From the sequence record NC_070967.1: 64,000 bases of DNA; one strand, 5' to 3'. Below the pieces are notes generated by a model, which did not search any database, had not been told where the DNA came from, and worked only from the letters and a program-made list of their open reading frames with translations. Below are positions 3,143 through 55,477 of this stretch, in pieces. Position 1 is the stretch's first letter. Every line of letters begins with the position of its first letter. A program made the position numbers and the translations under genes.

Positions 3143-4073
3143 ATGGTGAATAAGATGTTTCAAGACAACGTATCAAAGGTCCTCAAGCCTTCCTCTGAGT
3201 GGAGCGTTCTGAAGAACGTTACTGTTATGGATCCTGATGGATGGGATCGTCAGAACTTCGAGATCAGTTGGGATGAATTGATCTCTGAGGAAGAATTTGA
3301 TCGACGTGCAATGAGGTCAACTGTACTCTTTGTTAGGAAAGACGATGTTCAATCTGACATTAGCTAAATTTGTACTCGAAGCTCATAAGTCTGACAAAGA
3401 TATTACTAGTCGTAATGGATACGGTGGATACAATATCCACAAGGAGTCTTATGGATTTCTTCAGAAGATTGAGAAGAAGTTCGGAGCTAAGAGTGTAGCT
3501 GATCTCGAACGAATGATCAAGAAAGAAGAGACCAGACGTAAGACTCCTGTACCAGATCCTAATCCGATCTACAAGAATCAGCGTGCTCGGTATCGTCTTC
3601 TCAGAGACTATCTTGGAAATAGTTCAGACCTGAATGTTTACATCAGCAGCCAGGAATGGGACGTACATAACTATTTAGGTCAAGGATGGGTTGAGAAATT
3701 TAAGAGTGATTCCATTCTCCACCGTTGGTGCTGGAATGTGATGAAGCTCCAGTTTGATCTCGATGCTTTGATCATTAAGGTACGTACTCATTCTAATGTT
3801 GTAGGCTTCGAGAAAACTAATGAAGAGAATGATATCACCTGGACCGAGTTCGTCCTAGGTGAGCAAGCTCTCGATAAGTATATTGAAGTCCTAGAGATCC
3901 GTGCTAATCGTAAAGCTGAACGTGAGTACGAAGAGCATCAAGAATATCTTCGTCGTCTAGCTATTGAAGACTGGAAACGTGAACAGTTAGCTAAGATTCG
4001 TCTCGTACAGATCAGAGACGATGTCAAGGACAAATCTCGAGCTGACAAAAGGAAGAGGAGAGTAGCAGTATGA
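3143..4073 (+). CDS. Two hypothetical CDS (3143-3367, 3345-4073)
   Basis: Tight packing; the second has a charged, coiled-coil-like C-terminus. Confidence 0.65.
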
Positions 4074-4762
4074 CTAAGATTCGACATATTTCTTTCGACG
4101 TATGGAATACTCTAGTAATTCCTAATCCAGATTATGCCAGAGCACGATCCATGTACCTTGGTAAGGTATTCAATATGGTCTCGGAGGATGCTGCTAAGCT
4201 CTATTCGAGAGTTAAGAAATGGATCGATGAACTTGCTGTTCAGACTGGTATGGGTCCTGATGCTGAGAGCAATGTACTCATGCTTCTGAATATGGCTGAT
4301 CGTTATGCAGATCCTCAGGAGATCCTCATTAACTTTGAGAATCTTTTCTTCAAGTATCCTCCGATTATTCATCATGCAGTACGTGATGGACTTCGTGCAC
4401 TGAAGCATCATGGATATACGTTCTCTATCGCTAGCAATAGCAATTTCATATCTGGCAGAACGATGACTAAGTTCATTCATGCTGAATTTGGATGCATGGC
4501 TTATGAAGTTTACTCTGATCTCGAAGGTTATGCTAAGCCTCATCTCAGATTCTTTGAAGAAGTATTTCATGGTGCGAGGTTACAAGGTCTCGCAGACTAC
4601 TCGAGTGAAATTCTACATGTCGGAGATCACGAGATCTGTGATGTGAAGGGTGCAAACGACTACGGATTTAAGTCATTACTTTTCACCAATCCTGAAGATA
4701 TGTCCAAAGTTATTAAGAGAGTCCAGCAAAATGAACAACCACCAAGTGTATTATGCGCATAA
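4070..4762 (+). CDS. HAD-superfamily hydrolase
   Basis: Motif I FDVWNTL, motif II ASNS, AKP lysine, motif IV HVGDHEICD. Confidence 0.9.
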   Translation: MTKIRHISFDVWNTLVIPNPDYARARSMYLGKVFNMVSEDAAKLYSRVKKWIDELAVQTGMGPDAESNVLMLLNMADRYADPQEILINFENLFFKYPPIIHHAVRDGLRALKHHGYTFSIASNSNFISGRTMTKFIHAEFGCMAYEVYSDLEGYAKPHLRFFEEVFHGARLQGLADYSSEILHVGDHEICDVKGANDYGFKSLLFTNPEDMSKVIKRVQQNEQPPSVLCA

Positions 4763-5585
4763 ATTTACTTCGATGGAAGATCTTCCATTCGATGCTGTAG
4801 ACTATTGTGCTCTTAAGTTCGGATCTGACGAGGTAGCTCGTCGATTTGGATATGAATTAGCTGAGAAGTTCTTCGAGGAACATTCCAGTCGAATCGTGAC
4901 GAATCATTGTGCAGTGATTCCATCTCCTTATAACTTCGTACCTAATGCAGCAACCATTCTATCGAAGCATTTCATTAATCGTCTGAATGAACTCATCGTT
5001 GAGGTCAATGGCGATTACGTTGACTACGTTAGAATCCATCGTAAGGTCACATATACTGGTGACTTTGGTAAGCTCAATGAGGATGCTCGTCGAAAGCTTA
5101 TTGGACAGGATTCATTCTATGTCAACAAGCAGATTCTGAAGAATAAGCTCCTGATCTACTTGGACGACGTGATCATTACTGGTGCTCACGAAGATCGTCT
5201 CAAGGAAGTCATGGTCAAGAACAAGATGAAGAATGATTGTTTCTTCGTCTACTATGGTAAGTACTTCGGTACTGAACCTACGATCGAGAATAAGATCAAC
5301 TTCGGAGGTATTGAAACTGTCGAAGATTATGTTAATTTTATTACCGATCGAGATCATCTCATTGTTCGTCCGATCAAGTACCTTCTAAGTCTACCTAATG
5401 AACAATTTAAGTTCTATCTCAACAAGACAAGTAGAACTCGTCTTGAGGAACTATTCCACTCATGCTTAGGTGAAGGGTACAATCGTATTCCTCAGTACCA
5501 GGAGAATTTTGTAGCTCTGAGAGATCAGGTCAAGTATCTGTCTGAAGAGAATAGAGTATCTCGAATTTATGACAAGGTAGGTTAA
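4731..5585 (+). CDS. Phosphoribosyltransferase (ComF-related, PRTase_3-like)
   Basis: PRPP-binding loop LLIYLDDVIITGAH; N-terminal YCALKFGSD; VIPSPY; start placed at ATG 4731. Confidence 0.75.
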   Translation: MNNHQVYYAHKFTSMEDLPFDAVDYCALKFGSDEVARRFGYELAEKFFEEHSSRIVTNHCAVIPSPYNFVPNAATILSKHFINRLNELIVEVNGDYVDYVRIHRKVTYTGDFGKLNEDARRKLIGQDSFYVNKQILKNKLLIYLDDVIITGAHEDRLKEVMVKNKMKNDCFFVYYGKYFGTEPTIENKINFGGIETVEDYVNFITDRDHLIVRPIKYLLSLPNEQFKFYLNKTSRTRLEELFHSCLGEGYNRIPQYQENFVALRDQVKYLSEENRVSRIYDKVG

Positions 5586-5773
5586 TGATTAATAAAATTG
5601 AGATCACTGAGCAGGAGTCAATAGAATTCAAACTTGAATTCGATCTTGCTGAAGTACGTAAATCTAACTATGTTATGGTCCCTATCAGTCTAGCTCGTAA
5701 GATTGATGCGTACTTCACAGAGGAGTTCAAGCGTAATCCTACGTTTGATCCTACGACTAACACCTTCAAGTAA
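5585..5773 (+). CDS. Hypothetical protein
   Basis: TAATG overlap with the PRTase gene; followed by a terminator. Confidence 0.6.
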   Translation: MINKIEITEQESIEFKLEFDLAEVRKSNYVMVPISLARKIDAYFTEEFKRNPTFDPTTNTFK

Positions 5774-5779
5774 TCATCG

Positions 5780-5814
5780 GCCCTCATCTATGAAAGTAGG
5801 TGAGGGCTATTTTC
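5780..5814 (+). terminator. Putative intrinsic terminator
   Basis: GCCCTCATCTA-TGAAAG-TAGGTGAGGGC followed by TATTTTC. Confidence 0.7.
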
Positions 5815-5833
5815 ATGCATCATAGGTGGAACC

Positions 5834-6406
5834 ATGATCTTTAGTCTTAGTAATTCAGAATACTTCAGTCTTGCAGATGCAGTATGCACAGCTGAAGACT
5901 CTCAAGGTCGAGTACCTGTTGACAAGCACATTGTCAAGAAGCTCATTGCATATCTGGAAGCAGACAAGTACTTTAATCTCGGTACAGTATGTGTAGCATT
6001 ACTTCCTGTTGAGGATGGTCTTCTATTGATTCGTCGTAATCGTCAAGGTGACCCTGGATTCGGTATGCTAGCACTACCTGGAGGATTTCAGAAGGGTAGT
6101 AAAGCTCAGAATATGTACGATGCTGTCGTCGAAGAGGTACTGGAAGAGACTCGTATCCAAACTAAGCGAGATGACTACATACTCATGGATGGCGATACTG
6201 ATGAGTACGAACATAATGTTCTATTCTTCAGGCATATCGGTCTGCCAGGTAAAGCAGAAGACTACATCAAAGACTTTGTACCTCTTGACGATGAGGTATC
6301 TGAACTTGTTCATATCAAGAAGACTGTCGAGACAGCTTTCCCTATGCATACTCGAGCAATCGATAGATTCTTTCAGGACGAATTCATTAAAGATTTCCTC
6401 CCTTGA
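5834..6406 (+). CDS. Nudix hydrolase
   Basis: LLLIRR, ALPGGF and a variant Nudix box (VVEEVLEETRI). Confidence 0.85.
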   Translation: MIFSLSNSEYFSLADAVCTAEDSQGRVPVDKHIVKKLIAYLEADKYFNLGTVCVALLPVEDGLLLIRRNRQGDPGFGMLALPGGFQKGSKAQNMYDAVVEEVLEETRIQTKRDDYILMDGDTDEYEHNVLFFRHIGLPGKAEDYIKDFVPLDDEVSELVHIKKTVETAFPMHTRAIDRFFQDEFIKDFLP

Positions 6407-7860: not shown

Positions 7861-7937
7861 TTTAGATCTGAGAAAACTCGTCAACTCAACCTCAGTGAAA
7901 ATGTTAATAAATCTCAAGTGATTCAAGGAGAATCCAA

Positions 7938-8729
7938 ATGAATAATCCTTTCAGCAAATCCATGATGGATCGTATGTTCAAGCAGGTCGACGGTGTCGTC
8001 TGGGATCTGATGTCTGGTTCGAAGATCGGCATCAAGACGAAGGAAGGTATCGCTACCGTCGATCTCAATCTCGAAGAAGAGACTGTATCAGTAGCTCCTG
8101 TCAAGACGACTCGTCGTAAGGCAGGTGCAGAACCTGTAGCTCCTCTCGCTATTCCGACTCCGTCTCCGATCATGGAAGCTCCGGATGCTCAGGTCTCGAT
8201 CAATCTGTTCGATGACTTCGGTATGGCTCTGCCTGCATTCGCTCAGTCGACTCCTGTCGAGGCTATCGGTCTCGGTGATATGATCTGGAACTCTGCTCAG
8301 AATCGTGTCATGGGATGGGTCGTCAAGGTCAGTCCCAATCGTAAGAGCTTCAAGGTCCTCAAGACGGATGGTACTCGTAGCGAGTGGTCTCCTCCGAAGG
8401 TCAATGTACTCGGATTCGAGACTGGTACGATGGTCGTACGTTCTCTGATCAACATGCTTCCTGGTGGAGCTACTGGTCAGAATGGTCTGGAAGGCATGCA
8501 GTCGTCTCTCGGTCAGATGCTCATGATGTCGTCCATGATGGGTGGCAGTGAAGGTGACTCTGAGAACATGCTCAAGGACATCATGCCGATGATGCTCATG
8601 TCGCAGATGGGCATCGGTGGTGCTCAAGGTGGTATGGGTCAGATGATGCAGACCATGATGATGATGAAAATGATGGGTGGTATGAATCGCGGTAGCGGTG
8701 GTACCAAGCGTAGTTTTTTCGACAACTAA
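7938..8729 (+). CDS. Protein with Met/Gly-rich low-complexity C-terminal tail
   Basis: SD AAGGAG; tail GGMGQMMQTMMMMKMMGG; ends ...KRSFFDN* across a slippery site. Confidence 0.85.
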   Translation: MNNPFSKSMMDRMFKQVDGVVWDLMSGSKIGIKTKEGIATVDLNLEEETVSVAPVKTTRRKAGAEPVAPLAIPTPSPIMEAPDAQVSINLFDDFGMALPAFAQSTPVEAIGLGDMIWNSAQNRVMGWVVKVSPNRKSFKVLKTDGTRSEWSPPKVNVLGFETGTMVVRSLINMLPGGATGQNGLEGMQSSLGQMLMMSSMMGGSEGDSENMLKDIMPMMLMSQMGIGGAQGGMGQMMQTMMMMKMMGGMNRGSGGTKRSFFDN

Positions 8730-8790
8730 GCTCTGATTCTGGAGAGGATGGATCTCGGATTAGACTCCGAGATCTGTCTTCGGAGCTTAG
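8714..8790 (+). promoter_or_regulatory. Candidate programmed -1 ribosomal frameshift signal
   Basis: In-frame heptamer T TTT TTC (8714-8720), spacer GACAA, then hairpin 8726-8790 (about 11 bp outer and 14 bp inner stem, loop TTAGAC). Confidence 0.7.
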
Positions 8791-9157
8791 ACATCTCCGT
8801 ATCGTAGGAGAGACATATAGATCACGGTATGCACAGAATGTGTATCGTGATGTTAAAGAAAATGATCCAGTCATCCTCGAATGGGAGAAGACCAATCGTA
8901 TGGATGGATGTGCTCATAAGGTCTTCGTCTACGATCCAATGAATGAACGAGGTACCCATGTAGGGTATATCGATCGAAATCAAGCAGCTAGGATTGTTAG
9001 TGAACTTGCCAAGTATAAATACACTGAGAAGACTCATCGTATTGTTGGTAAGATCACGAGAGACAATCCTGGTAAGTACAACGAAATCGAGATACTAGGA
9101 CTCATCAGCACTACAGAGTCTGAACAGCATCTCAAAGATTATTATAGAAGGAAATAA
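8714..9157 (+). CDS. HIRAN-domain module, probably expressed as the -1 frameshift extension of 7938-8729
   Basis: -1 frame open from 8714: LRIVGETYR...VKENDPVILEWEKTNRMDGCAHKV...HVGYIDRNQAARI matches the HIRAN pattern; the ORF-track start GTG 8840 cuts off the first HIRAN strand. Confidence 0.7.
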   Translation, partial: FFRQLSSDSGEDGSRIRLRDLSSELRHLRIVGETYRSRYAQNVYRDVKENDPVILEWEKTNRMDGCAHKVFVYDPMNERGTHVGYIDRNQAARIVSELAKYKYTEKTHRIVGKITRDNPGKYNEIEILGLISTTESEQHLKDYYRRK

Positions 9158-9161
9158 CCAC

Positions 9162-10085
9162 ATGGGTGGCGGACGTTTTGATACTAATGCATATGCAAGC
9201 CTGTCGACTGCTCGTACAGTTCGTACTGACGGTACCCGTATGCATCACACTGAAGTCTTCAGGGCTAAGGTCGTGGATAGCAAGTTCTCTCCTCGTAGCA
9301 TCAAGGTACGTGAGTCGGTTGACTCGGAGACATCTCCGAATTCTCGTCCGATCATCGTCGGTCTTGACTTCAGTGGATCGATGGGATCGATTGCAGGTGA
9401 GATGGCTAACAATCAGCTTGGTAAGCTGATGGAGAATGTCGTTGGTACGAAGGCAGTAGCTGATCCTCATCTGCTGTTCCTCGGTATCGATGACGTTCAT
9501 GCATCCTTCTCGTCTGAATCTCTTCAGGCTACTCAGTTCGAAGCTGATATTCGTATCGCTGAACAGCTGACTGAACTGAAGAATATCGGTCGAGGTGGAG
9601 GTAATGGATTCGAATCCTACAATCTCGCATGGTACTTCGCTGCATACAAGACGAAGATCGACTCCTTCAAGAAGCGTGGTAAGAAGGGACTCCTCTTCAC
9701 TATCGGCGATGAAGGTGTACCTGCAGATCTGAATGCATCTCATCTTGAGACTGTCTTCGGATCAGGTGATCTTCCTGTTCTCAGCAACGATACTCTCCTG
9801 AGCACTGTTCGTCAGGAATGGGATGTATTCCACATCATTGCTGAGGAAGGTGACTACTGCAGAAATGGTAGTAGCCATGTCAGCAGGCAGTGGTATGGTC
9901 TCCTCGGCAATCGTGCTATTCTGATGAGCGACTATCGCTACGTCTCGGATATCATCGTTGCTACGATCGCTGTCAATGAAGGTCGTGATCCGGATGATCT
10001 CCTGTCTTCTTACGAGGACAAGGAAGCTCGTAAGGTTATCGAGCGTGCACTCTACGGTATGCGAGATTTCGCTAAGTCTCTGTAA
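9162..10085 (+). CDS. vWA-domain protein
   Basis: MIDAS-like IIVGLDFSGSMG, GGGGNGFESY, LFTIGDE; N-terminal MGGGRF. Confidence 0.85.
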   Translation: MGGGRFDTNAYASLSTARTVRTDGTRMHHTEVFRAKVVDSKFSPRSIKVRESVDSETSPNSRPIIVGLDFSGSMGSIAGEMANNQLGKLMENVVGTKAVADPHLLFLGIDDVHASFSSESLQATQFEADIRIAEQLTELKNIGRGGGNGFESYNLAWYFAAYKTKIDSFKKRGKKGLLFTIGDEGVPADLNASHLETVFGSGDLPVLSNDTLLSTVRQEWDVFHIIAEEGDYCRNGSSHVSRQWYGLLGNRAILMSDYRYVSDIIVATIAVNEGRDPDDLLSSYEDKEARKVIERALYGMRDFAKSL

Positions 10086-10110
10086 TCTGCTCCAATAATC
10101 TTGGACTGAA

Positions 10111-10152
10111 TAGGTGAACTAGAGCTCCCTAAGAGATTTCTTCTTAGGGAGC
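10111..10152 (+). promoter_or_regulatory. Degenerate cassette copy overlapping a perfect 10-bp inverted repeat
   Basis: TAGGTGAACTA-N12-AGATTTCTTC; GCTCCCTAAG (10124-33) / CTTAGGGAGC (10143-52). Confidence 0.55.
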
Positions 10153-10185
10153 AATCCCGTTTAACTCAACTAGGATTTCACTACT

Positions 10186-11436
10186 ATGAAGAATGCTCAT
10201 ATCGTTATTGGTGCACAATACGGAGATGAAGGCAAGGGTGCCACTGTGAATCTCCTTGCTCAGAAATATCCAGATGCATTGAATGTCCGATTCAATGGTG
10301 GAGCTCAAGCAGGACATACTGTGACACTTGAGGATGGTCGTCGTCACGTATTCTCTCACTTTGGATCAGGTACTCTCCAAGGACTGGATACGTATTTCAA
10401 CGAGTCCTCCATCGTGAATCCTTGGAGATTCAAGGATGAGCATACTGTAATCATGAGTGAATTCGGTCTGAGTCCTCTTGTTTTTGTACATGAGAATGCT
10501 CTGGTCACATCGCCTTACGATATGGCAATCAATCAACTCTGGGAGACTTGCCGTAGTGGAGATCGTCATGGATCCTGCGGTATGGGTATTTATGAGACAA
10601 TCCTGAGATCTCGTAAGCCTGAATCTCTTGTACGAGTCCATGAACTAGTTTATCATGTATTTGAAGACATCAATGATCGGTACAAAGAATATGCGTATCG
10701 TAGACTTCAGGATGTCAGGGATTTTCATCCTGATTGTGAAGAGTTCATTAAGGATACTGAGAAATTTATTGATAGTGAAGATGTTACTCGTCAGTTCTTT
10801 CTTGACTACTCATTCTTCATGTCAATGATTAATGTCGTTAAAGACGATATTAATATCTATCCGCAGTACGATACTGTGATCTTCGAAGGAGCTCAAGGTC
10901 TCCAACTCGACCAGAATTATGTTGAGTATCTAGGTAATCTGCCTCATGCTACTCCATCCAATCCTGGACTAGGTAACAAGTCACTCCACGATGCATTCGA
11001 GAAGTATGGTCTCACTGAAGACCATATTCACGTGTACTATCTGACGAGATTCTATCAGACTCGTCACGGTAATGGACCATTCGATCGTGAGGTTAATCCT
11101 GACGCTCTAGGCGACATTGTTGATCTCACCAATATCGACAATCCTCATCAAGGATCGATTCGGTATGCTCCACTCAATGTCTTTAGTCTACTCGAAGCAG
11201 TACTGTTCGATCTTCAGTATATCGATAACTGCAGACCTTATCTGGTGGTCACATGTGTTGACCAAATTGTCAACGATGAAGTTGTCATCAAAGCACTGCA
11301 TGATGACAGTCACGTTAAGATTCCATTCGAGGATTTGAAGATGATCCTACGTGATAACTTTGAACTCATGTACGGCATCTTCTACTCTGATGGAAAGTCT
11401 ATGAAGTACGAGGAACATCTTTATGACGCAGCATAA
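10186..11436 (+). CDS. purA: Adenylosuccinate synthetase-like protein (divergent PurA family)
   Basis: GAQYGDEGKG, RFNGGAQAGHTV, IFEGAQG, TRHGNGPF; the canonical GTT-x-GIGP loop is replaced by GSCGMGIYET. Confidence 0.85.
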   Translation: MKNAHIVIGAQYGDEGKGATVNLLAQKYPDALNVRFNGGAQAGHTVTLEDGRRHVFSHFGSGTLQGLDTYFNESSIVNPWRFKDEHTVIMSEFGLSPLVFVHENALVTSPYDMAINQLWETCRSGDRHGSCGMGIYETILRSRKPESLVRVHELVYHVFEDINDRYKEYAYRRLQDVRDFHPDCEEFIKDTEKFIDSEDVTRQFFLDYSFFMSMINVVKDDINIYPQYDTVIFEGAQGLQLDQNYVEYLGNLPHATPSNPGLGNKSLHDAFEKYGLTEDHIHVYYLTRFYQTRHGNGPFDREVNPDALGDIVDLTNIDNPHQGSIRYAPLNVFSLLEAVLFDLQYIDNCRPYLVVTCVDQIVNDEVVIKALHDDSHVKIPFEDLKMILRDNFELMYGIFYSDGKSMKYEEHLYDAA

Positions 11437-13917
11437 ATCTGAAGGAGATCAGCTCGAAGAAGCTATCGCTGAGTACTTCACGCAGAAGCGTCAGGGAACG
11501 GAATTTGATACCAAGAATCCATTCAAGAAGGAGATTCAATTCGAGAAGAAGACTAAGACTATCTGCATTGCTGAGGATGTAGCCCATCGTGGAGGAATGA
11601 CAATCTGGTATGACGAGGATCAGATGATTCCTAATATACGTCAACTCTCCATTCGAGAAATCGAGAATCTCGAGAAGAGTCTCGGAGCAAGATTATTCGT
11701 ATCCTCTCAAGAGCATGCTGATGCAGTCATCCGCCCTAATCTCGATAAGTGCAGAAGATACCTATCTGTGATGCTTCATCCTAATAAGGCTATGGAGTAT
11801 CTAGGTCAGCTTCTCCTGTATCTTCAAGATCTCCATCCGGATGATCATTGTAGAGCTTATGAAGATGCTCTCTCATTTTATAATCATCATAATCCGTATC
11901 AGAGAGTAGAACCTACTGGTCTAGGCTTTACTCGTCTCGTACAACCTTCCTTGTTAGGAGATGATAGTGAATCGCGTTGATAAGATTAAAGCATTGGATA
12001 ATGCTACTGAATGCAAGTGGTACGTCGATATAGCATTTGATGCAGGTACTGCAGAAGCTCGTACCATGATGTACGGTTCAGAAATGAATCGATGGAAGTT
12101 CAGTGGATCACCTGATGATCTTGACGAACTTATCGACAATTCTCTCCAAGCTGCTTATGAAGAAGTAGTAGAGCATAAAGTTAAGCTGTACTCTGATATG
12201 CCTTGTCATGATTTTCTACCAGATGATCGTAATCTGATGAACTCATACGATAATGCATCTTTCCATAATCTTGAACATCTGTGGGTAGGACTATGAGCGA
12301 ATTTGAACGTATTAAACCTGAGGATATTGATGTCGGTGTATACATCTGGTACGGTGGACAGATGTCAGTATCTGGATGGGACTGCCCAGGTATCATCTAT
12401 GAGGTCAATGAAGAGGAGCAATGGTTCCGTATCCAATCTCTAGACGATCTCAATAAGAATGAACAGAAGTATGAGTTCGTACCTGATGACCGTAGTGCTA
12501 CGTCAAGTCGCACGATCCGTAAGATCGATCCTCGAGATGCTCTCGACTACGTTCGTAAGATGAAAGATCGTCGTCACTCTGATGTAGGTGACGCTGAAGA
12601 ACGTCTTCGTAAGGCTAAAGAGTCAGCACTGACGTTCCAGGTATTCTTTGATAATATGAAGAAAGAGATTGAGCATGCTGAATCTGTCTGAGGTTAAGGT
12701 AGGAGACTACCTATGGATGGAATTTGAATTCGAAGATGACTATCCTGGACGAGAGGATATTGATGAACCTCTCAGAATTATGGCAATCAATGGAAATGTT
12801 CTTCTAGTAATGTACTTGAAGAGTCTCTCAGGTACCTTACGATCGATTGATCTCGATACGATTCATTCTCGTACTAAATTGTACAAACCTACTACTGACA
12901 AATTGAGATCATTCTTACTTCATCTTGCTGCTAAGACGAGAGATCGTATTGAGGCTCTGAAGAAAGAGAAGAGTGACAACGATGTTCTCCTCAATAATAC
13001 TCGTAGCATTCTCAAAGAATTGATGGAATCAGATGATGCAAGCAAAGCTACCGTATGATCTTGTGATTGACAATGACACTATGTGGTTCGCAGGAGATGA
13101 TGTCAAGTTTGAATGCCATGTATGGAGTGACGGATCTATGTCCATCATGATACATCGAGGTACTGAATCTGTTCTTCTCCATTTTGATAACATCAGTGAA
13201 GCTGAAAAGTCAGGATGGAATGTATGATGTATAATACGAATCTCGGATTTTGGGTAGATCTTAATCAGATCGCTATGGTTAGTGAGTTTCTCAAAGGACG
13301 AGATCATCATTCGATTAAATTCTGCATATTGTACAAATATAGCTCTCAAGAAATATGGTACGAGTACGGAGTATTTGGTGACTCTACTCCGTACTTTATT
13401 CAGAAGAAGATGTATGAAGCATACAGGAAACTGAATGAAGCTTACGATTACAATGAGATACCGAAGTTTACGACTGAGTTCTACCTCGAGATGTTTGAAG
13501 ACTTGGTAGAGTCTATCGAAGAGCATCTTATCAACCTCATCAATGAAAAGATTAAGCACGATGCTAAGTAAGAGATTCTATGATACTGGGATGGGATTCT
13601 ATGTGGATCTCGAGCATATCCAAGCAGTTTCTAATGCTCAGGATACTCATCGATATGGTGAAGTGTGTTTCTCGATAAAGTACATGATGGGTGCAGGTAA
13701 TCACACATTGTATAACTTTAGTACATACTATGGTGATACTGAATTCGAGAAGGAAGTACTCGCAGCTACCAGAGCACTTTCAGACTCTCCTGAATGGAGA
13801 AAGCTTACTCAGGATCCTGACAAGAGGAGAATGCTAAGTAGAGTTACGATACCTATTCTCCAAAAGTACATTGACAGGATGTGGGAAGCTAAGAGCGAAT
13901 TCCTCTCATCACAATAG
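11423..13917 (+). CDS. Run of seven hypothetical CDS (11423-11980, 11961-12296, 12293-12691, 12675-13058, 13033-13227, 13215-13571, 13561-13917)
   Basis: Overlapping junctions; the last two share an N-terminal motif. Confidence 0.7.
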
Positions 13918-21166: not shown

Positions 21167-21654
21167 ATGATATTTCTTGAAGATACTGACATTGATACAG
21201 TCAATACAACATCCACTCACTTTGAGAAACTGGAAGGACCATTCTTTCAGATCACTCACAATACTGCATATACTCGTGCGACTTATACGATTAAGAGAGC
21301 ACTCATTATCAAGAAGAGTCTTGAAGAGAAGAAGGTCGATAAGAGACCATTTCACATTCGCATGAAAGATCATCCTAGTAGCAGGAAACATAAATAATGG
21401 CATATGACTTGAATATTCTTGATGATGGTGAGACAGAGATCGTCGCTAATGTCATGGGAAATCTAGGTCTCGAAGAGGGAGACGATGATGACCATGAGAA
21501 ATTCGTCAAGTTTCTAGAGACTGCTGACGAATTCGACATCCTGGATAAGTATCTCACATGGATCGGTATCATCGGATTCACTAACGAGATCCTTGATGTG
21601 ATCGAGAAGATCCGTGAAGCTAAGATCAAGACTGAGGACGAATCTAGTGATTGA
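21167..21654 (+). CDS. Two small CDS (21167-21397; 21397-21654 very acidic)
   Basis: TAATG coupling; the second has about 25 D/E versus 7 K/R in 85 aa. Confidence 0.65.
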
Positions 21655-22603
21655 AGAGAATCAGAATGTAGCTAATCATCTTAATCGTCTTGTCTCATTC
21701 TACAAGATCGCAGGTGAGACTAATAAGGCTACATCATTCGCTAAGGCTGCTGCGTCTATCCTTGCTATGGATGAATCTGTTCAAGGATATGACTTCTGGA
21801 AGAATAAGATTCCAGGGATTGGCGGATCGACGATTAAAGAGATCAGTGAGTATCTGAAATGGGGTACGACTGAGAGAATGAAGGATCTAGAATCCAAGCA
21901 TGCGACTCGTAATCCTGATCTTGCAGGACTTCAGACGATTCCTGGAGTAGGGATCATGAAAGCTCTGGAGCTATGGAAGAAGTATGGAGTAGCTGACGTC
22001 ATCGAAGCTATCAAAGCTGCTCAGAATGGACGTATTCCTGATGAAGAGCTCAAGAATAATATCCTCTCAATGGCAATTCAGCAGGATACTCTTGTTTACA
22101 GTGATGTGATTATCGCTGCTCAAGATCTATGCAATGCTATAGGTAAGATCAACGGATATGCACATACTCAATTCGTAGGATCAATCCGACGTAAGATCGA
22201 GACGTTGACAGAGATTGAGATCTTGTCAACGATTGAGGATGGAGATCTCATTCAAGTTCTGAGTAGTCGAGGTATTGACAAGATCGAATGGGTTGATCAG
22301 AGTCATGCTCGATTCAATCTACCTATTGGTGACAAGAGCATCACTACTTCCATCTATCTCACAACTCCTGAAGAGTACTACACAGGATTGTTGTACCGTA
22401 CTGGTCCTAAATCGTTCATCAAAGCTATCCAATCCTTCGCTAAGGAGAGGGGATGGAAGATGAATGAGCATCGACTTTTGTTGATCAGTGATCCTAAGAT
22501 CTCTCGACATATGCCTACTGAAGAACTACTGTTCAGATTCCTAGGACTTGAATACGTAGCTCCTGAAGATCGAGTTGATGAAACCTCAATCAAGAAGATA
22601 TGA
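21647..22603 (+). CDS. polX: Family X DNA polymerase-like protein, catalytic residues altered, no PHP domain
   Basis: KATSFAKAA, HhH motifs IPGIG and IPGVG, VGSIRRKIETLTEIEIL, LLYRTGPK, LGLEYVAPEDR. Confidence 0.85.
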   Translation: MIEENQNVANHLNRLVSFYKIAGETNKATSFAKAAASILAMDESVQGYDFWKNKIPGIGGSTIKEISEYLKWGTTERMKDLESKHATRNPDLAGLQTIPGVGIMKALELWKKYGVADVIEAIKAAQNGRIPDEELKNNILSMAIQQDTLVYSDVIIAAQDLCNAIGKINGYAHTQFVGSIRRKIETLTEIEILSTIEDGDLIQVLSSRGIDKIEWVDQSHARFNLPIGDKSITTSIYLTTPEEYYTGLLYRTGPKSFIKAIQSFAKERGWKMNEHRLLLISDPKISRHMPTEELLFRFLGLEYVAPEDRVDETSIKKI

Positions 22604-25414: not shown

Positions 25415-25834
25415 TTGACTACAGTCGCATATCGTAATGGTATTTTAGCAGCAGACTCATTAATCAACGTATCAGGTACTCGTGTAGGGAAGATAGTTAA
25501 GGTACGTCGTATTAATGACTACCTCGTAGGGTTCTCAGGTGATGTGGCTTGTTCCATGAGATTTATCAGAGGATTTGAGCTATCTGAATTTAAGTATCCA
25601 GTCCCTAGTGATATGACTGCACTGATCGTTGATCGTAAAAACAGAGTCATGAGAGTCGAGGGTGGAGAGTTCTTTGAATTTCTAAGAACTGACTATGACT
25701 CTATTGGTAGTGGATTTAACTTTGCACTAGGTGCTATGGCTCATGGAGCTAATGCAGTAGATGCTGTTAAATGTGCTATGAAGCATGACGTATATACAGG
25801 TGGACGCATTATGTCTATCTCGTTTAAGGACTGA
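25415..25834 (+). CDS. HslV/20S-proteasome-like Ntn-hydrolase peptidase
   Basis: N-terminal (M)TTVAY nucleophile, LAADS, KV, VGFSGD, SIGSG.NFALGAM..GA.AVDAV..A.K.DVYTGG. Confidence 0.85.
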   Translation: MTTVAYRNGILAADSLINVSGTRVGKIVKVRRINDYLVGFSGDVACSMRFIRGFELSEFKYPVPSDMTALIVDRKNRVMRVEGGEFFEFLRTDYDSIGSGFNFALGAMAHGANAVDAVKCAMKHDVYTGGRIMSISFKD

Positions 25835-35180: not shown

Positions 35181-35942
35181 ATGCGTAAGTATAATATTGC
35201 ACTGGCAGCTGCATACTCGCTCTCTGCCGTACTCTTTTCCTCAACTGCATCTGCTGCCACATGTGGTGGTCAGGCATGGTCCTGGGAATCCTTCCTGAGT
35301 GGAGCATGTAAGTCTACAGGAGTCTCCAATCCTGGAGATAACAAGCCTCAGCCTGGAGTACGTGGATCAGTACGTACTGTCTCGAGTGGATTCGCTCCTT
35401 CGAATGGATCATCTCCGTCGACATCTCCATCGACTGGCGTCTCTGATCCTGGTACCGATAATCCTGGTGACAATCATGGCAATCCTGGAGATGATAATCC
35501 TGGTCACGAGAATCCAGGTGATGATACTCCTGGTGGCGATGATCATGGAAATGATAATCCCGGACATGACAATCCGGGTGGTGATCACAATGACGATGGT
35601 CACAACGATAATGGCGACAATGGTAACCATGACAACGACGATAATGGGAACCATAACGATGACGACAATGGTCACAATAATGATCATGGAGATCATGATG
35701 GTGACAATGACTCTGGCAACAATGGTCATAACAATGATCATGACGGTCCATCTGGTGATCATAACAATGATGGTCATAACGACAATGGCCAGGATAATGG
35801 TCACAATCAGGATCAGTCTGGTAACGACGATAATGGCGGCGATCAGCCTTCTAATAATGAAGGCTCGAACAGTGATCACGACAACGATCACAACGACAAT
35901 GGTCATGGTAATGATGGTAAGGGACCAGGCAAAGGTAAGTAG
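35181..35942 (+). CDS. Secreted low-complexity Asp/Asn/Gly/His-rich protein
   Basis: Signal peptide ...LFSSTASA; repeated NPG(D/H)D and DGHN(D/N) units. Confidence 0.85.
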   Translation: MRKYNIALAAAYSLSAVLFSSTASAATCGGQAWSWESFLSGACKSTGVSNPGDNKPQPGVRGSVRTVSSGFAPSNGSSPSTSPSTGVSDPGTDNPGDNHGNPGDDNPGHENPGDDTPGGDDHGNDNPGHDNPGGDHNDDGHNDNGDNGNHDNDDNGNHNDDDNGHNNDHGDHDGDNDSGNNGHNNDHDGPSGDHNNDGHNDNGQDNGHNQDQSGNDDNGGDQPSNNEGSNSDHDNDHNDNGHGNDGKGPGKGK

Positions 35943-41371: not shown

Positions 41372-41865
41372 ATACTGAAAATGTTAAGTCTCTCAATTGG
41401 TCTACTCTCCAGGAGAATGGTATTAAATATGCATGGTCTCCATTCGGAGGTATCTACTCAATCCATGTAAATCCTGAAGGATCGTGTACTGTTAACTTCC
41501 GTAATGATAAGTATGAGAATTACGATAGTCTTGAAGATGGAATCGTAGCTGCTCAGAATCATCACGTTTCTAAGATCAAGGATCTATTTCAGCTACCTGA
41601 TCCTAATGCTGAACCTACATGGAATATTTAGATGTCTACTAATTTAAGTACAGTATATTATGCTATCAAAGATCCTGTCACTGATACTCTGCAATGCGGG
41701 TACACATCTCTGACGAATGGATTGTACTCAACTCCAGGTAAGGCTCAGTCGTACATCGATCGTAAGATCAGACGTTCTCGATATCCATCTCAGTCTGAAG
41801 AGTATAAGAAATGGAAGATCGTACCTGTCAAGATCGTGGAGGTGACTGAAGATGAAGTTAACTGA
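41359..41865 (+). CDS. Two hypothetical CDS (41359-41631, 41632-41865)
   Basis: Packing. Confidence 0.6.
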
Positions 41866-42400
41866 TTACATTATGGTACTTGACAATGTCCTGGATCATC
41901 AGACATGTCATCAGATCATTGATAAGTTTCAGAGTCATGGTGAGCTAGAGTCTCAGAGACGAGAGGGATTGTACCAGTTTGATCAACTCAATCTCAATAC
42001 TGCTGGACCTAACTGGGATGGTGAGCTACGTACGATCATTACTGCTCTACGAGGATCACTGACCACCTATCGTCAGGAAGTACCTACATCTGGATGGCCT
42101 CAACAATTCGGATGGGAGCAGGTACGTATGAAGAGATATCTCCCTAACGATAACGATCAGTTCCCTGTACATGTAGACGTAGCTGACTACAAGTCTGCTC
42201 GACGATTCCTAGTATTCTTCATGTACCTGAACGATGTTGATGAAGGTGGAGAGACTACGTTCCCAGAGTTGAATGTAGCAGTTAAGCCTAAGGCTGGACG
42301 AGTACTCATCTTCCCTCCGATGTGGCAATATCCTCATACTGGTGAGAAGCCTATCTCTGCTCCTAAGTTCATCATCGGGAGTTATCTCCATTATGTGTGA
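41852..42400 (+). CDS. 2OG-Fe(II) oxygenase (prolyl-4-hydroxylase-like)
   Basis: HVD (HxD), YLNDVDEGGETTF, PKAGRVLIFPP.W.YPH, KFIIGSY. Confidence 0.92.
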   Translation: MKLTDYIMVLDNVLDHQTCHQIIDKFQSHGELESQRREGLYQFDQLNLNTAGPNWDGELRTIITALRGSLTTYRQEVPTSGWPQQFGWEQVRMKRYLPNDNDQFPVHVDVADYKSARRFLVFFMYLNDVDEGGETTFPELNVAVKPKAGRVLIFPPMWQYPHTGEKPISAPKFIIGSYLHYV

Positions 42401-54073: not shown

Positions 54074-55477
54074 ATGGATAAGATTACTGGCGATACTTTG
54101 ATCCAGATGGGATACTTTCCAGGATCATGGTTCAAGAAGACTATCGAAGCTGCTGACAATATGTTGAAAGCTGGATGGACTATGGAGATGATCGAGCAGT
54201 ACATTGGAGAATGTGCTCCTAAGGCTACTCCTGTAATCCCTGCTCAGATGGCTGGAGATGTACCGATCTTCTTCAACATTGATGCAGAGACGGATTACGA
54301 GATCGATAATCTGGCTAAGGTCAGAGAGCATATGGATGAGATTGCACGCATCCCTACCATCCGAGCACTATCAGTTATGCCTGATGCATGTCCGTCAGGT
54401 AAGGAATTAGGCACTATCCCAGTAGGAGGAGTAGCAGTTGCTCATAATGCCATACATCCTGGAATGCACAGTAATGATGTCTGCTGCTCTGTCGCTATAT
54501 CAGTTTTTCCATCCGAGACCGATCCCACATCCATACTCGACGCTGGTATGGTCATCTCTCACTTTGGTCCAGGTGGTCGTACTTATTCTAATGACATGCA
54601 GGTATCATCAGATCTTCTAGCACGATTCGAGAGTAATCGATACTTGAAGATGCTCACTGGTATCGCTCAGAAGCATATGGCTACTCAGGGAGATGGTAAT
54701 CACTTCTTCTACGTAGGAAGACTGCAGAGTACTGGTCAAGTAGCACTAGTTACCCATCATGGATCTCGTGGAGTAGGTGCAGCATTATATAAGCTAGGCA
54801 TCGAAGCAGCACATAAGCAGACCCAGGAGAGGGCTCCGTGGATGAGTAAGCTCAACTCATGGTTGGATGCTGATTCTGAAGAAGGAGAGGAATACTGGGA
54901 GGCATTGCAGATCGTACGCCTATGGACGAAGAAGAATCACTTCAATATTCATGATGCAGTCGCTAAAGCAGTGAATGCCAAGCTAAAGGATCGTTATTGG
55001 AACGAGCATAACTTCGTATTCAAGCGTGGAGACATGTTCTACCATGCTAAGGGAGCTACTCCGAACTACTACGGATTCTCTCCTGAATACGGTGATAAGT
55101 GCTTGATCCCTCTCAACATGGCTGAACCTATTCTCATTACGAAAGTGCACGAGAATGAATGGTATGGTGAAGCTCCTATGACTCCATCTTTAGGATTCTG
55201 TCCTCACGGTGCTGGTCGTAACTTCTCACGTACTCAGTTCATGAAGAATCTTGAAGAGCAGAAGATCTCTCCGAAGAAGATGATCGAAGACATGACGAGT
55301 AAGTACGATATCCGTGCATACTCTGGTAAGTATGATATCTCTGAGTTCCCGATGGCTTACAAAGATCACAAGCAGATCATTGCAGGTATTGAGAAATACA
55401 AACTCACTGAGATCGTTGATCAGGTCATCCCGTATGGTTCGATCATGGCAGGTCATAGCAAGTTCACGAGACGATAA
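54074..55477 (+). CDS. rtcB: RtcB family RNA ligase
   Basis: MPDAC, IPVGGV, DVCCS, GDGNHF, THHGSRG, NEHNF, HAKGATP, IPLNM, PHGAGR. Confidence 0.95.
   Translation: MDKITGDTLIQMGYFPGSWFKKTIEAADNMLKAGWTMEMIEQYIGECAPKATPVIPAQMAGDVPIFFNIDAETDYEIDNLAKVREHMDEIARIPTIRALSVMPDACPSGKELGTIPVGGVAVAHNAIHPGMHSNDVCCSVAISVFPSETDPTSILDAGMVISHFGPGGRTYSNDMQVSSDLLARFESNRYLKMLTGIAQKHMATQGDGNHFFYVGRLQSTGQVALVTHHGSRGVGAALYKLGIEAAHKQTQERAPWMSKLNSWLDADSEEGEEYWEALQIVRLWTKKNHFNIHDAVAKAVNAKLKDRYWNEHNFVFKRGDMFYHAKGATPNYYGFSPEYGDKCLIPLNMAEPILITKVHENEWYGEAPMTPSLGFCPHGAGRNFSRTQFMKNLEEQKISPKKMIEDMTSKYDIRAYSGKYDISEFPMAYKDHKQIIAGIEKYKLTEIVDQVIPYGSIMAGHSKFTRR

Follow-up and report, generated by a model that had tools for sequence, protein, structure and literature searches.

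Several described systems each share a feature with the locus considered here. Programmed -1 frameshift cassettes of bacteria and phages are known from dnaX, with its products tau and gamma, and from the tail chaperone G/GT of phage lambda. TerY-type vWA proteins occur with a kinase and a phosphatase in Ter-associated triads, the pairing of PRTase_3 and HAD genes is known from Ter-associated 'nucleoside-like metabolite' clusters, GroEL has Gly-Gly-Met tails, and in the adenylosuccinate synthetase PurA the residues R131 and T300/T301 have aspartate-binding roles. PurA R303 contacts aspartate as well as the ribose 2'-OH (PMC8342488), in PurZ a Ser replaces the catalytic-loop Asp (bioRxiv 10.1101/2025.10.22.683976), and NrtR is an ADP-ribose-responsive repressor of the genes for the synthesis of nicotinamide adenine dinucleotide (NAD) (PMC2330246). 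Here we analyzed the gene block gp016-gp019 of Rhizobium phage RHph_Y65 (NC_070967.1, 206.8 kb, Kleczkowskaviridae), which lies in a stretch of 64,000 nucleotides, hereafter the window, corresponding to bases 1-64000 of that genome; bases 7900-11500 are 100% identical to the record, with matching coordinates. We propose, with a probability of roughly 0.5, that the block is the phage form of a conserved, self-contained module that has a vWA protein and a PurA-paralogous ligase as its core, an interchangeable upstream adaptor, a HIRAN domain added by frameshifting and a role connected with NAD and adenylates. The module itself is genuine and conserved and, as far as we found, previously undescribed. 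The block is also present in nine related Rhizobium phage records at 96-98% identity, and RefSeq labels its genes as three hypothetical proteins and a '2-aminooxy adenylosuccinate synthetase'. Its features are the following:

7938..8729, + strand: gp016, intact gene, conserved N-terminal domain followed by a Met/Gly-rich tail
about 7965-8462, + strand: conserved N-terminal domain of gp016 (family alignment)
about 8463-8726, + strand: Met/Gly-rich tail of gp016, ending in an aromatic-aromatic-Asp motif (composition, alignment)
8714..9157, + strand: -1-frame open stretch of gp016, linker plus HIRAN, starting at a heptamer within the last five gp016 codons
8726..8790, + strand: extended stem-loop (11-bp outer stem, internal loop, 14-bp hairpin), putative frameshift stimulator (folding)
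about 8807-9040, + strand: HIRAN domain (Pfam on the -1-frame stretch)
8840-9157, + strand: gp017 as annotated, from GTG 8840 of the -1-frame stretch
9162..10085, + strand: gp018, vWA fold with a MIDAS-like DxSGS...D
10186..11436, + strand: gp019, ligase of the PurA superfamily, distinct subfamily
10222-10239, + strand: P-loop GDEGKG of gp019 (sequence)

The four consecutive + strand open reading frames (ORFs) that had been read from the letters (7938-8729, 8840-9157, 9162-10085 and 10186-11436) are all present, and none of the genes contains an internal stop or a disrupting frameshift; we read the change of frame between gp016 and gp017 as recoding rather than damage.

Loci were gathered via the vWA gene, using the best 80 of more than 560 matches in each of two collections, IMG/VR and species-representative bacterial genomes; the 80 IMG/VR loci and nine others form a set of 89 viral or GenBank phage loci, beside 80 bacterial ones. 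The vWA and PurA-like genes are adjacent in 86/89 and 77/80 of these, respectively, and five of the six misses lie at contig ends. The sequence-only reading had suspected one uncharacterized system and had named a lack of co-occurrence elsewhere as evidence that would count against it. The comparison of gene neighborhoods showed that the genes do co-occur: of the 164 evaluable loci, which come from unrelated phages and from bacterial chromosomes, 163 have the pair side by side, and in 25 other viral loci (26 including the window) the vWA gene is immediately preceded by a gene for a Met/Gly-rich homolog of gp016. When all ORFs neighboring the pair at the viral loci were clustered, only four families recurred, namely the vWA, the PurA-like and the Met/Gly-rich protein and a protein of about 340 residues with a J-domain. 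The sole evaluable exception to adjacency (L056) has the J and vWA genes and no PurA-like gene within 6 kb, and at another locus (L060) the PurA-like gene stands upstream of the vWA gene and not downstream.

Among GenBank phages, tblastn found relatives of gp018 in 219 records and relatives of gp019 in 238. The pair is adjacent in Vibrio Va1-like phages, in one fecal phage and in about 200 Bxz1-like (cluster-C) mycobacteriophages, and metagenomic contigs show the same gene order. In Clostridium carboxidivorans P7 the cassette sits amid ordinary chromosomal genes under the NCBI product names 'J domain-containing protein', 'hypothetical protein' and 'adenylosuccinate synthase'. The Bxz1-like mycobacteriophages carry an 88-residue ORF without a family match between the vWA and PurA-like genes (L003:6017-6283, MoMoMixon gp258), as well as a polynucleotide kinase gene 1.5 kb upstream of the J-kinase gene. 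The gap of 100 nt between gp018 and gp019 contains a perfect 12-bp hairpin at about 10124-10152, with no U-tract after it, and its full length has a folding z-score of -2.3; at other loci, too, 50-120 nt commonly separate the vWA gene from the PurA-like gene. In total the vWA family was counted in over 570 species-representative genomes of bacteria, in over 560 viral contigs and in about 220 phages of GenBank, the Bxz1-like mycobacteriophages included, and literature searches on the PurA-like and vWA proteins, the J-domain, NrtR and the combination of HIRAN with frameshifting returned nothing on the module. If the module is confirmed, a large family has apparently been studied by no one.

The vWA protein and the PurA-paralogous ligase form the invariant core of this arrangement, while the third gene upstream of them is exchanged: it is of the J-type in 95 loci, mostly bacterial, and of the Met/Gly type in 26 loci, all of them viral, and no locus has both. 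The HIRAN domain accompanies the Met/Gly type in 6/26 loci (the window and five others) and the J-type in 0/95, and is for this reason regarded as an accessory; the proposal that the core function is exercised at DNA ends is not supported by these numbers. The J protein of about 340 residues has an invariant HPD motif, and its profile matches DnaJ J-domains and Ser/Thr kinases. The consensus of its kinase-like core lacks the Asp of HRD at the aligned catalytic-loop position and also, by our reading of the alignment, the Asp of DFG; the J-domain motif and the missing Asp residues are the reason for the name J-domain pseudokinase used here. At five bacterial loci (L112, L119, L125, L132 and L139; e.g. 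L132:5125-5799) the J protein is replaced, immediately upstream of the vWA gene, by a hydrolase of the GDSL/SGNH type with about 220 residues, which may represent a third type of adaptor or partner. A C-terminal docking motif shared by the J-type and Met/Gly-type adaptors was considered and dropped; the pattern is found in 56/90 and 119/141 cases and is a loose one.

The Met/Gly-rich tail of gp016 proved real, with 22 Met and 20 Gly among the last 88 residues (48%) versus 13% in the first 175, and it goes beyond low complexity, as several Met-rich motifs are conserved in an alignment of 39 relatives. A role of the tail in condensates, which the sequence-only reading had hinted at, gained no support. 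The family has 167 relatives, and neither the gp016 sequence nor the family profile had a match in Pfam, PHROG, PDB or PDB profiles; Jackhmmer did not extend the Met/Gly-rich family past 24 loci. In the Rhizobium phages an insert rich in Pro, Ala and Thr, about 40 residues long (about 8070-8192), interrupts the N-terminal domain of gp016; it is absent from all other aligned relatives.

The identification of gp017 as a HIRAN protein was borne out by Pfam (PF08797, E 2.7e-7, above the gathering score), and the match becomes stronger when the whole -1-frame open stretch is considered instead of the annotated gene (35.2 versus 30.8 bits, cut-off 24.7). On the whole stretch the domain is matched with E 1.1e-8 over profile positions 6-76, and on the annotated ORF only over 17-77, such that the match begins eleven profile positions before the annotated GTG; upstream of 8840 no ATG, GTG or TTG occurs in the -1 frame of gp016. 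The earlier description of HIRAN as an extension of gp016 fails for an in-frame extension, HIRAN being a separate ORF in the -1 frame, and no natural in-frame fusion was found among the longer gp016 relatives, whose extra length is N-terminal. It is supported for an extension by frameshifting, for which a conserved signal was found. A U/C heptamer of the X_XXY_YYZ type lies in the last five codons of gp016, followed after a 5-nt spacer by the stem-loop at 8726..8790, which has a folding energy (dG) of -43.9 kcal/mol and a z-score of -4.76, with 0/200 shuffled sequences folding as well, and for which neither a U-tract terminator nor an Rfam match was called.

The same layout is found in every other Met/Gly-rich gene that is linked to HIRAN (L016, L020, L033, L040 and L050), all of them on uncultured IMG/VR contigs and with vWA proteins only 37-44% identical to that of the Rhizobium phage window. 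In these five loci the heptamer stands 2-4 codons before the stop and the structures have dG values of -35 to -47.5 and z-scores of -3.1 to -5.6; across the HIRAN-linked loci the structure begins 1-7 nt 3' of the heptamer, and in 6/6 the HIRAN domain lies in a -1 frame that is open for 145-215 codons without an intervening stop. The heptamer is present in 6/6 HIRAN-linked Met/Gly-rich genes versus 1/17 others (Fisher p 7e-5), and in the lone heptamer-bearing gene without HIRAN the -1 frame closes at once. These comparisons suggest that a conserved programmed -1 frameshift likely yields two products, gp016 alone and a minor gp016-HIRAN form. The alternative, which we consider unlikely, is that no frameshift takes place, that HIRAN is translated alone, here from GTG 8840, and that the stem-loop is an element of transcript processing, attenuation or translational coupling. 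It would agree with the RefSeq annotation of two genes and with the situation in 4/6 loci, where an ATG belonging to the HIRAN ORF precedes the complete domain and is overlapped by the structure, and the heptamers concerned, U_UUU_UUC and C_CCU_UUC, may be inefficient in these hosts. However, in the window and in L016 the HIRAN homology, including its first strand, precedes any start codon, and the near-restriction of the heptamer to HIRAN-linked genes, the stop-free -1 frame and the close spacing between heptamer and structure all argue for recoding. If true, this would be an uncommon example, backed by comparative evidence, of a programmed -1 frameshift that lies outside phage tail genes and adds a DNA-end-binding domain.

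The vWA assignment of gp018 rests on a structure model, because searches by sequence alone failed: gp018 had no match in Pfam (E up to 10), including the Pfam vWA models, in NCBIfam, or in PDB by phmmer and profile. Its AlphaFold model (predicted local distance difference test 91, predicted template modeling score 0.90) matched vWA domains in Foldseek with probability 1.0, among them integrin beta-I, CD11b I, Ku80, Rpn10 and NorD, in agreement with the fold that the sequence-only reading had assigned. The residues resembling a metal ion-dependent adhesion site (MIDAS) that are conserved in the family are D69-x-S/T71-G72-S73 and D183, an assignment that covers the DxSxS and the later Asp of the DxSxS...T...D pattern, and the family has motifs of its own (RESxDS, QFEAD and GGGGNxxESY). 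All 86 distinct vWA sequences checked begin with Met-Gly, and profile matches begin at residue 1. The family comprises 1764 relatives, and 2193 clusters at 50% identity; no fusion of the vWA and PurA-like proteins was found among the best 150 representatives.

gp019 was recognized as similar to adenylosuccinate synthetase by Pfam (Adenylsucc_synt, PF00709, E 2.4e-34), as had been read from its letters; the match spans profile positions 1-278 only, and the AlphaFold model matches full-length PurA structures (Foldseek, template modeling score 0.65-0.74). In 150 distinct members of the family D14, K17, H44 and Q237 are invariant, which correspond to E. coli Asp13, Lys16, His41 and Gln224, and the same is true of T256, which together with Q237 contacts inosine monophosphate (IMP). 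The ligase is shown by this alignment to keep all residues needed to phosphorylate an IMP-like nucleotide at its 6-oxo group at the expense of an NTP, and we conclude from them that gp019 is in all likelihood an active ligase with PurA-type chemistry on such a nucleotide. Its divergence from PurA was likewise confirmed: gp019 scores 100.2 bits against the purA equivalog NF002223 (cut-off 402) and 89 bits against TIGR00184 (cut-off 395.6), and its aspartate loop is remodeled. Residues specific to the subfamily are Q41, S130-C131, H294, T315-N316, Q322, R326 and T356-C357-x-D359, and relative to E. coli PurA the family has invariantly changed N38 to Gln, T128-T129 to Ser-Cys and V273 to His. The position of E. 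coli R131 is occupied by V/L/I/M (133), that of R303 is variable with S/T/K/A (324), and in place of the loop with which PurA closes over aspartate the family has a longer one that is just as invariant, D313-x-T315-N316...Q322...R326. At the positions of the guanine-recognition motifs (N/T)KxD and SxG the family has T356-C/H357-x-D359 and S401-x-G403, with the Asp kept and the Lys lost, a correspondence by motif position only. A profile of the family matches PurA structures in PDB with E 1e-39, PurZ with 2e-8 and PurZ0 with 9e-4. To judge by sequence, gp019 is neither a PurA equivalog nor PurZ.

These data bear directly on what the enzyme may do. The name carried by the RefSeq record would imply that gp019 is PurZ and that the phage swaps adenine for 2-aminoadenine, and in addition to that product name PHROG phrog_1211 matches with E 3.8e-54; we find this scarcely credible, given that the same subfamily resides in bacterial chromosomes and that its profile is far closer to PurA than to PurZ structures. 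PurZ identity was rejected on two further counts, the Asp being kept at the position of the PurZ Ser in 147/147 aligned residues and NCBIfam NF038379 scoring 36.7 bits against a cut-off of 300. No datZ, mazZ or dpoZ is annotated in 1-80 kb of the record or found among the recurrent neighbors. The label '2-aminooxy adenylosuccinate synthetase' (PHROG 1211) is attached to the subfamily in Rhizobium, Vibrio and Bxz1-like mycobacteriophage RefSeq records, and 13 RefSeq mycobacteriophage records listed print the PurZ-type name where the GenBank copies say 'PurA-like'. Inherited as it is from the PHROG name, the label is probably wrong, and its correction matters because the name wrongly implies 2-aminoadenine genomes. 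The GenBank name purA points instead to an ordinary auxiliary metabolic PurA that would raise the supply of AMP or dATP beside functionally unrelated neighbors. The intact fold and catalytic residues would suit such an enzyme, as would an early region rich in nucleotide-metabolism genes, but a vWA neighbor in all evaluable loci except one, bacterial chromosomes included, a score of only a quarter of the equivalog cut-off, the absence of Arg from the R131 and R303 positions and the family's own invariant residues make it quite improbable.

A further explanation, which we regard as doubtful, keeps the module and changes the chemistry: the amine would be not free aspartate but a different amino acid or an amine on a protein, for which the invariant N-terminal glycine of the vWA protein is one candidate, and the reaction would give a nucleotide that is modified or serves in signaling, or else a protein-nucleotide adduct, with a use in the conflict between phage and host. 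This would be in line with an amine-binding loop that is remodeled and yet invariant, with the new invariant His and Cys at the active-site positions of E. coli V273 and T129, with an obligatory vWA partner that always starts with Met-Gly, and with the occurrence of the module in both bacteria and lytic phages. However, the conserved R326, T315 and N316 could still bind aspartate, loop changes of the PurZ kind are compatible with aspartate use (PMC8342488), and PADLOC 2.0 had no match for gp016, gp018, gp019 and two typical J proteins, giving generic kinase matches only for the mycobacteriophage J protein and weak PDC-M03B matches for HIRAN. Taken to its farthest, this idea would make the family the founder of a third branch of the PurA superfamily, functionally distinct from both PurA and PurZ, in which the vWA partner supplies or is itself the amine (e.g. 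through its N-terminal glycine), a new N6-substituted adenine nucleotide or protein-nucleotide adduct acts in an NAD/ADP-ribose-linked phage-host conflict, and adaptor swaps among J-domain, Met/Gly-rich tail and frameshifted HIRAN redirect the complex to chaperones or DNA ends. We hold this to be a long shot. Confirmation of the module would give the PurA/PurZ family of enzymes a third branch.

According to the module reading that we prefer, the enzyme would use GTP and an IMP-like substrate to make adenylosuccinate or a different N6-substituted adenine nucleotide, and would do so while complexed with the vWA protein. Targeting or regulation of this complex would fall to the adaptor, via Hsp70 in the J-type and via the Met/Gly tail in RHph_Y65, where the frameshifted fraction of gp016 would gain a HIRAN domain that binds DNA 3' ends. 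In the phage, the module may keep up the pool of adenine nucleotides and NAD during infection, and a counter-defense role is possible. The connection with the NAD/adenylate economy was drawn from the NrtR-family genes beside the bacterial modules and from the NAD-salvage genes in the vicinity of the phage modules. A gene of the NrtR family (NUDIX plus NrtR_WHD) adjoins about 42/80 bacterial modules; among L097-L171 its orientation is mostly divergent relative to the J gene or, where J is absent, relative to the vWA gene (e.g. L164:4131-4817, minus strand). Near viral modules NAMPT was found at 9 loci and NMNAT-NUDIX at 5-6 loci. From this neighborhood alone we deduce that the module probably serves the adenine-nucleotide/NAD economy. 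PurA-like, vWA and HIRAN genes are mentioned neither in the NrtR regulon paper (PMC2330246), which also says nothing of purA, adenylosuccinate or DnaJ, nor in the NARP3 paper on phage NAD+ reconstitution pathways (NARPs). With NAD and nucleotide depletion being central in phage defense, these NrtR and NAD-salvage neighbors give a concrete clue to the role of the module. In the window itself, three genes upstream of the block are the following:

within 4070-6406, + strand: gp010, HAD hydrolase, 3-5 kb upstream
within 4070-6406, + strand: gp011, PRTase_3 (Pfam PF15610, E 9e-46), 3-5 kb upstream
within 4070-6406, + strand: gp013, NUDIX gene 1.5 kb upstream of the block, annotated NMNAT/NUDIX, in which Pfam finds NUDIX only

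The PRTase_3 and HAD neighbors are not conserved beside the module at other loci.

Several observations weigh against the module reading as a whole or against parts of it. The frequency of the PurA-like subfamily without a vWA partner is only roughly gauged by the 238 versus 219 GenBank records. RNAalifold gave no covariation for the six frameshift elements, which MAFFT could not align, and the relatives among the Rhizobium phages are identical at the element except for one change in the hairpin loop. Membership in the NrtR family was checked by Pfam on one representative, and the proximity of NAD genes in T4-like phages may be the mere clustering of early nucleotide-metabolism genes. Concerning the enzyme, the aspartate-loop alignment of the gp019 family to E. 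coli PurA has a low posterior probability, and PurZ still uses aspartate despite its own loop changes (PMC8342488); for both reasons gp019 may still carry out plain adenylosuccinate synthesis.

The sequence-only reading had also supported the unity of the block by a uniform C-ending codon usage. This was not confirmed, and the bias is not distinctive: the fraction of codons ending in C is 0.25/0.20/0.26 for gp016-gp018 and 0.13-0.27 in the neighbors (one 0.33). The fraction ending in G or C (GC3) is 0.58/0.38/0.47 for the same genes, and the high value of gp016 reflects mainly G-ending codons, which we attribute to ATG and GGN. As a description, then, the earlier account was right about the ORFs and domains and not confirmed on codon usage; as an interpretation, its single module and its HIRAN extension are supported, and its codon-usage argument and its core function at DNA ends are not. 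It was also correct in noting the absence of PurB, since the annotation of the record shows neither this nor any further gene of the purine pathway in bases 1-80000. Scans for intrinsic terminators and promoters across the block gave results at chance level. Throughout the window every annotated gene lies on the + strand and the cumulative GC skew climbs steadily, and no tRNA gene was found. Other annotated features of the window are:

21647-22603, + strand: PolX (annotation)
25415-25834, + strand: HslV-like peptidase (annotation)
35181-35942, + strand: Rho-like protein (annotation)
41852-42400, + strand: 2-oxoglutarate-Fe(II) oxygenase (annotation)
54074-55477, + strand: RtcB (annotation)

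Compared with the described systems, the gp016/gp017 arrangement is similar to dnaX and lambda G/GT in its zero-frame heptamer near the stop, its short spacer, the stable structure downstream of it and the extra domain that the longer -1 product would carry. In contrast to these, the gene here is non-structural, the added domain is HIRAN, the heptamers are U/C-rich, the downstream ORF is able to start independently in four loci, and the trans-frame product is predicted from the genes alone. The flexible Met/Gly-rich tail of gp016 resembles the tails of the chaperonin GroEL. Similar to the TerY triads, the module places a vWA protein beside a kinase-like protein, but it has no PP2C phosphatase, its kinase-like domain lacks the catalytic Asp, and gp018 matches no Pfam vWA model; a likeness to the Ter clusters is also seen in the PRTase_3 and HAD genes 3-5 kb upstream of the block in the window. 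NARP2 enzymes (NAMPT and NMNAT-NUDIX) lie near several phage modules, and NrtR-family genes flank about half of the bacterial ones. With PurZ and PurZ0 (6fm1, 7odx, 7vf6) gp019 has in common that it is a phage-borne PurA homolog with an altered loop for the third substrate and ribose and a shared PHROG, whereas PurZ has Ser in place of Asp, uses ATP or dATP, is a short archaeal-type protein and travels with datZ or mazZ. The closest likeness in sequence and fold is to PurA (EC 6.3.4.4; E. coli 1ade), with which gp019 shares the full-length fold, the GDEGKG P-loop with its catalytic Asp and Lys, the catalytic His, and the IMP-contacting Gln and Thr, while T-x-x-D and S-x-G, to judge by motif position, may stand where PurA reads guanine; unlike PurA, however, the gp019 family is paired with a vWA gene, and this also as a cassette in bacterial chromosomes.

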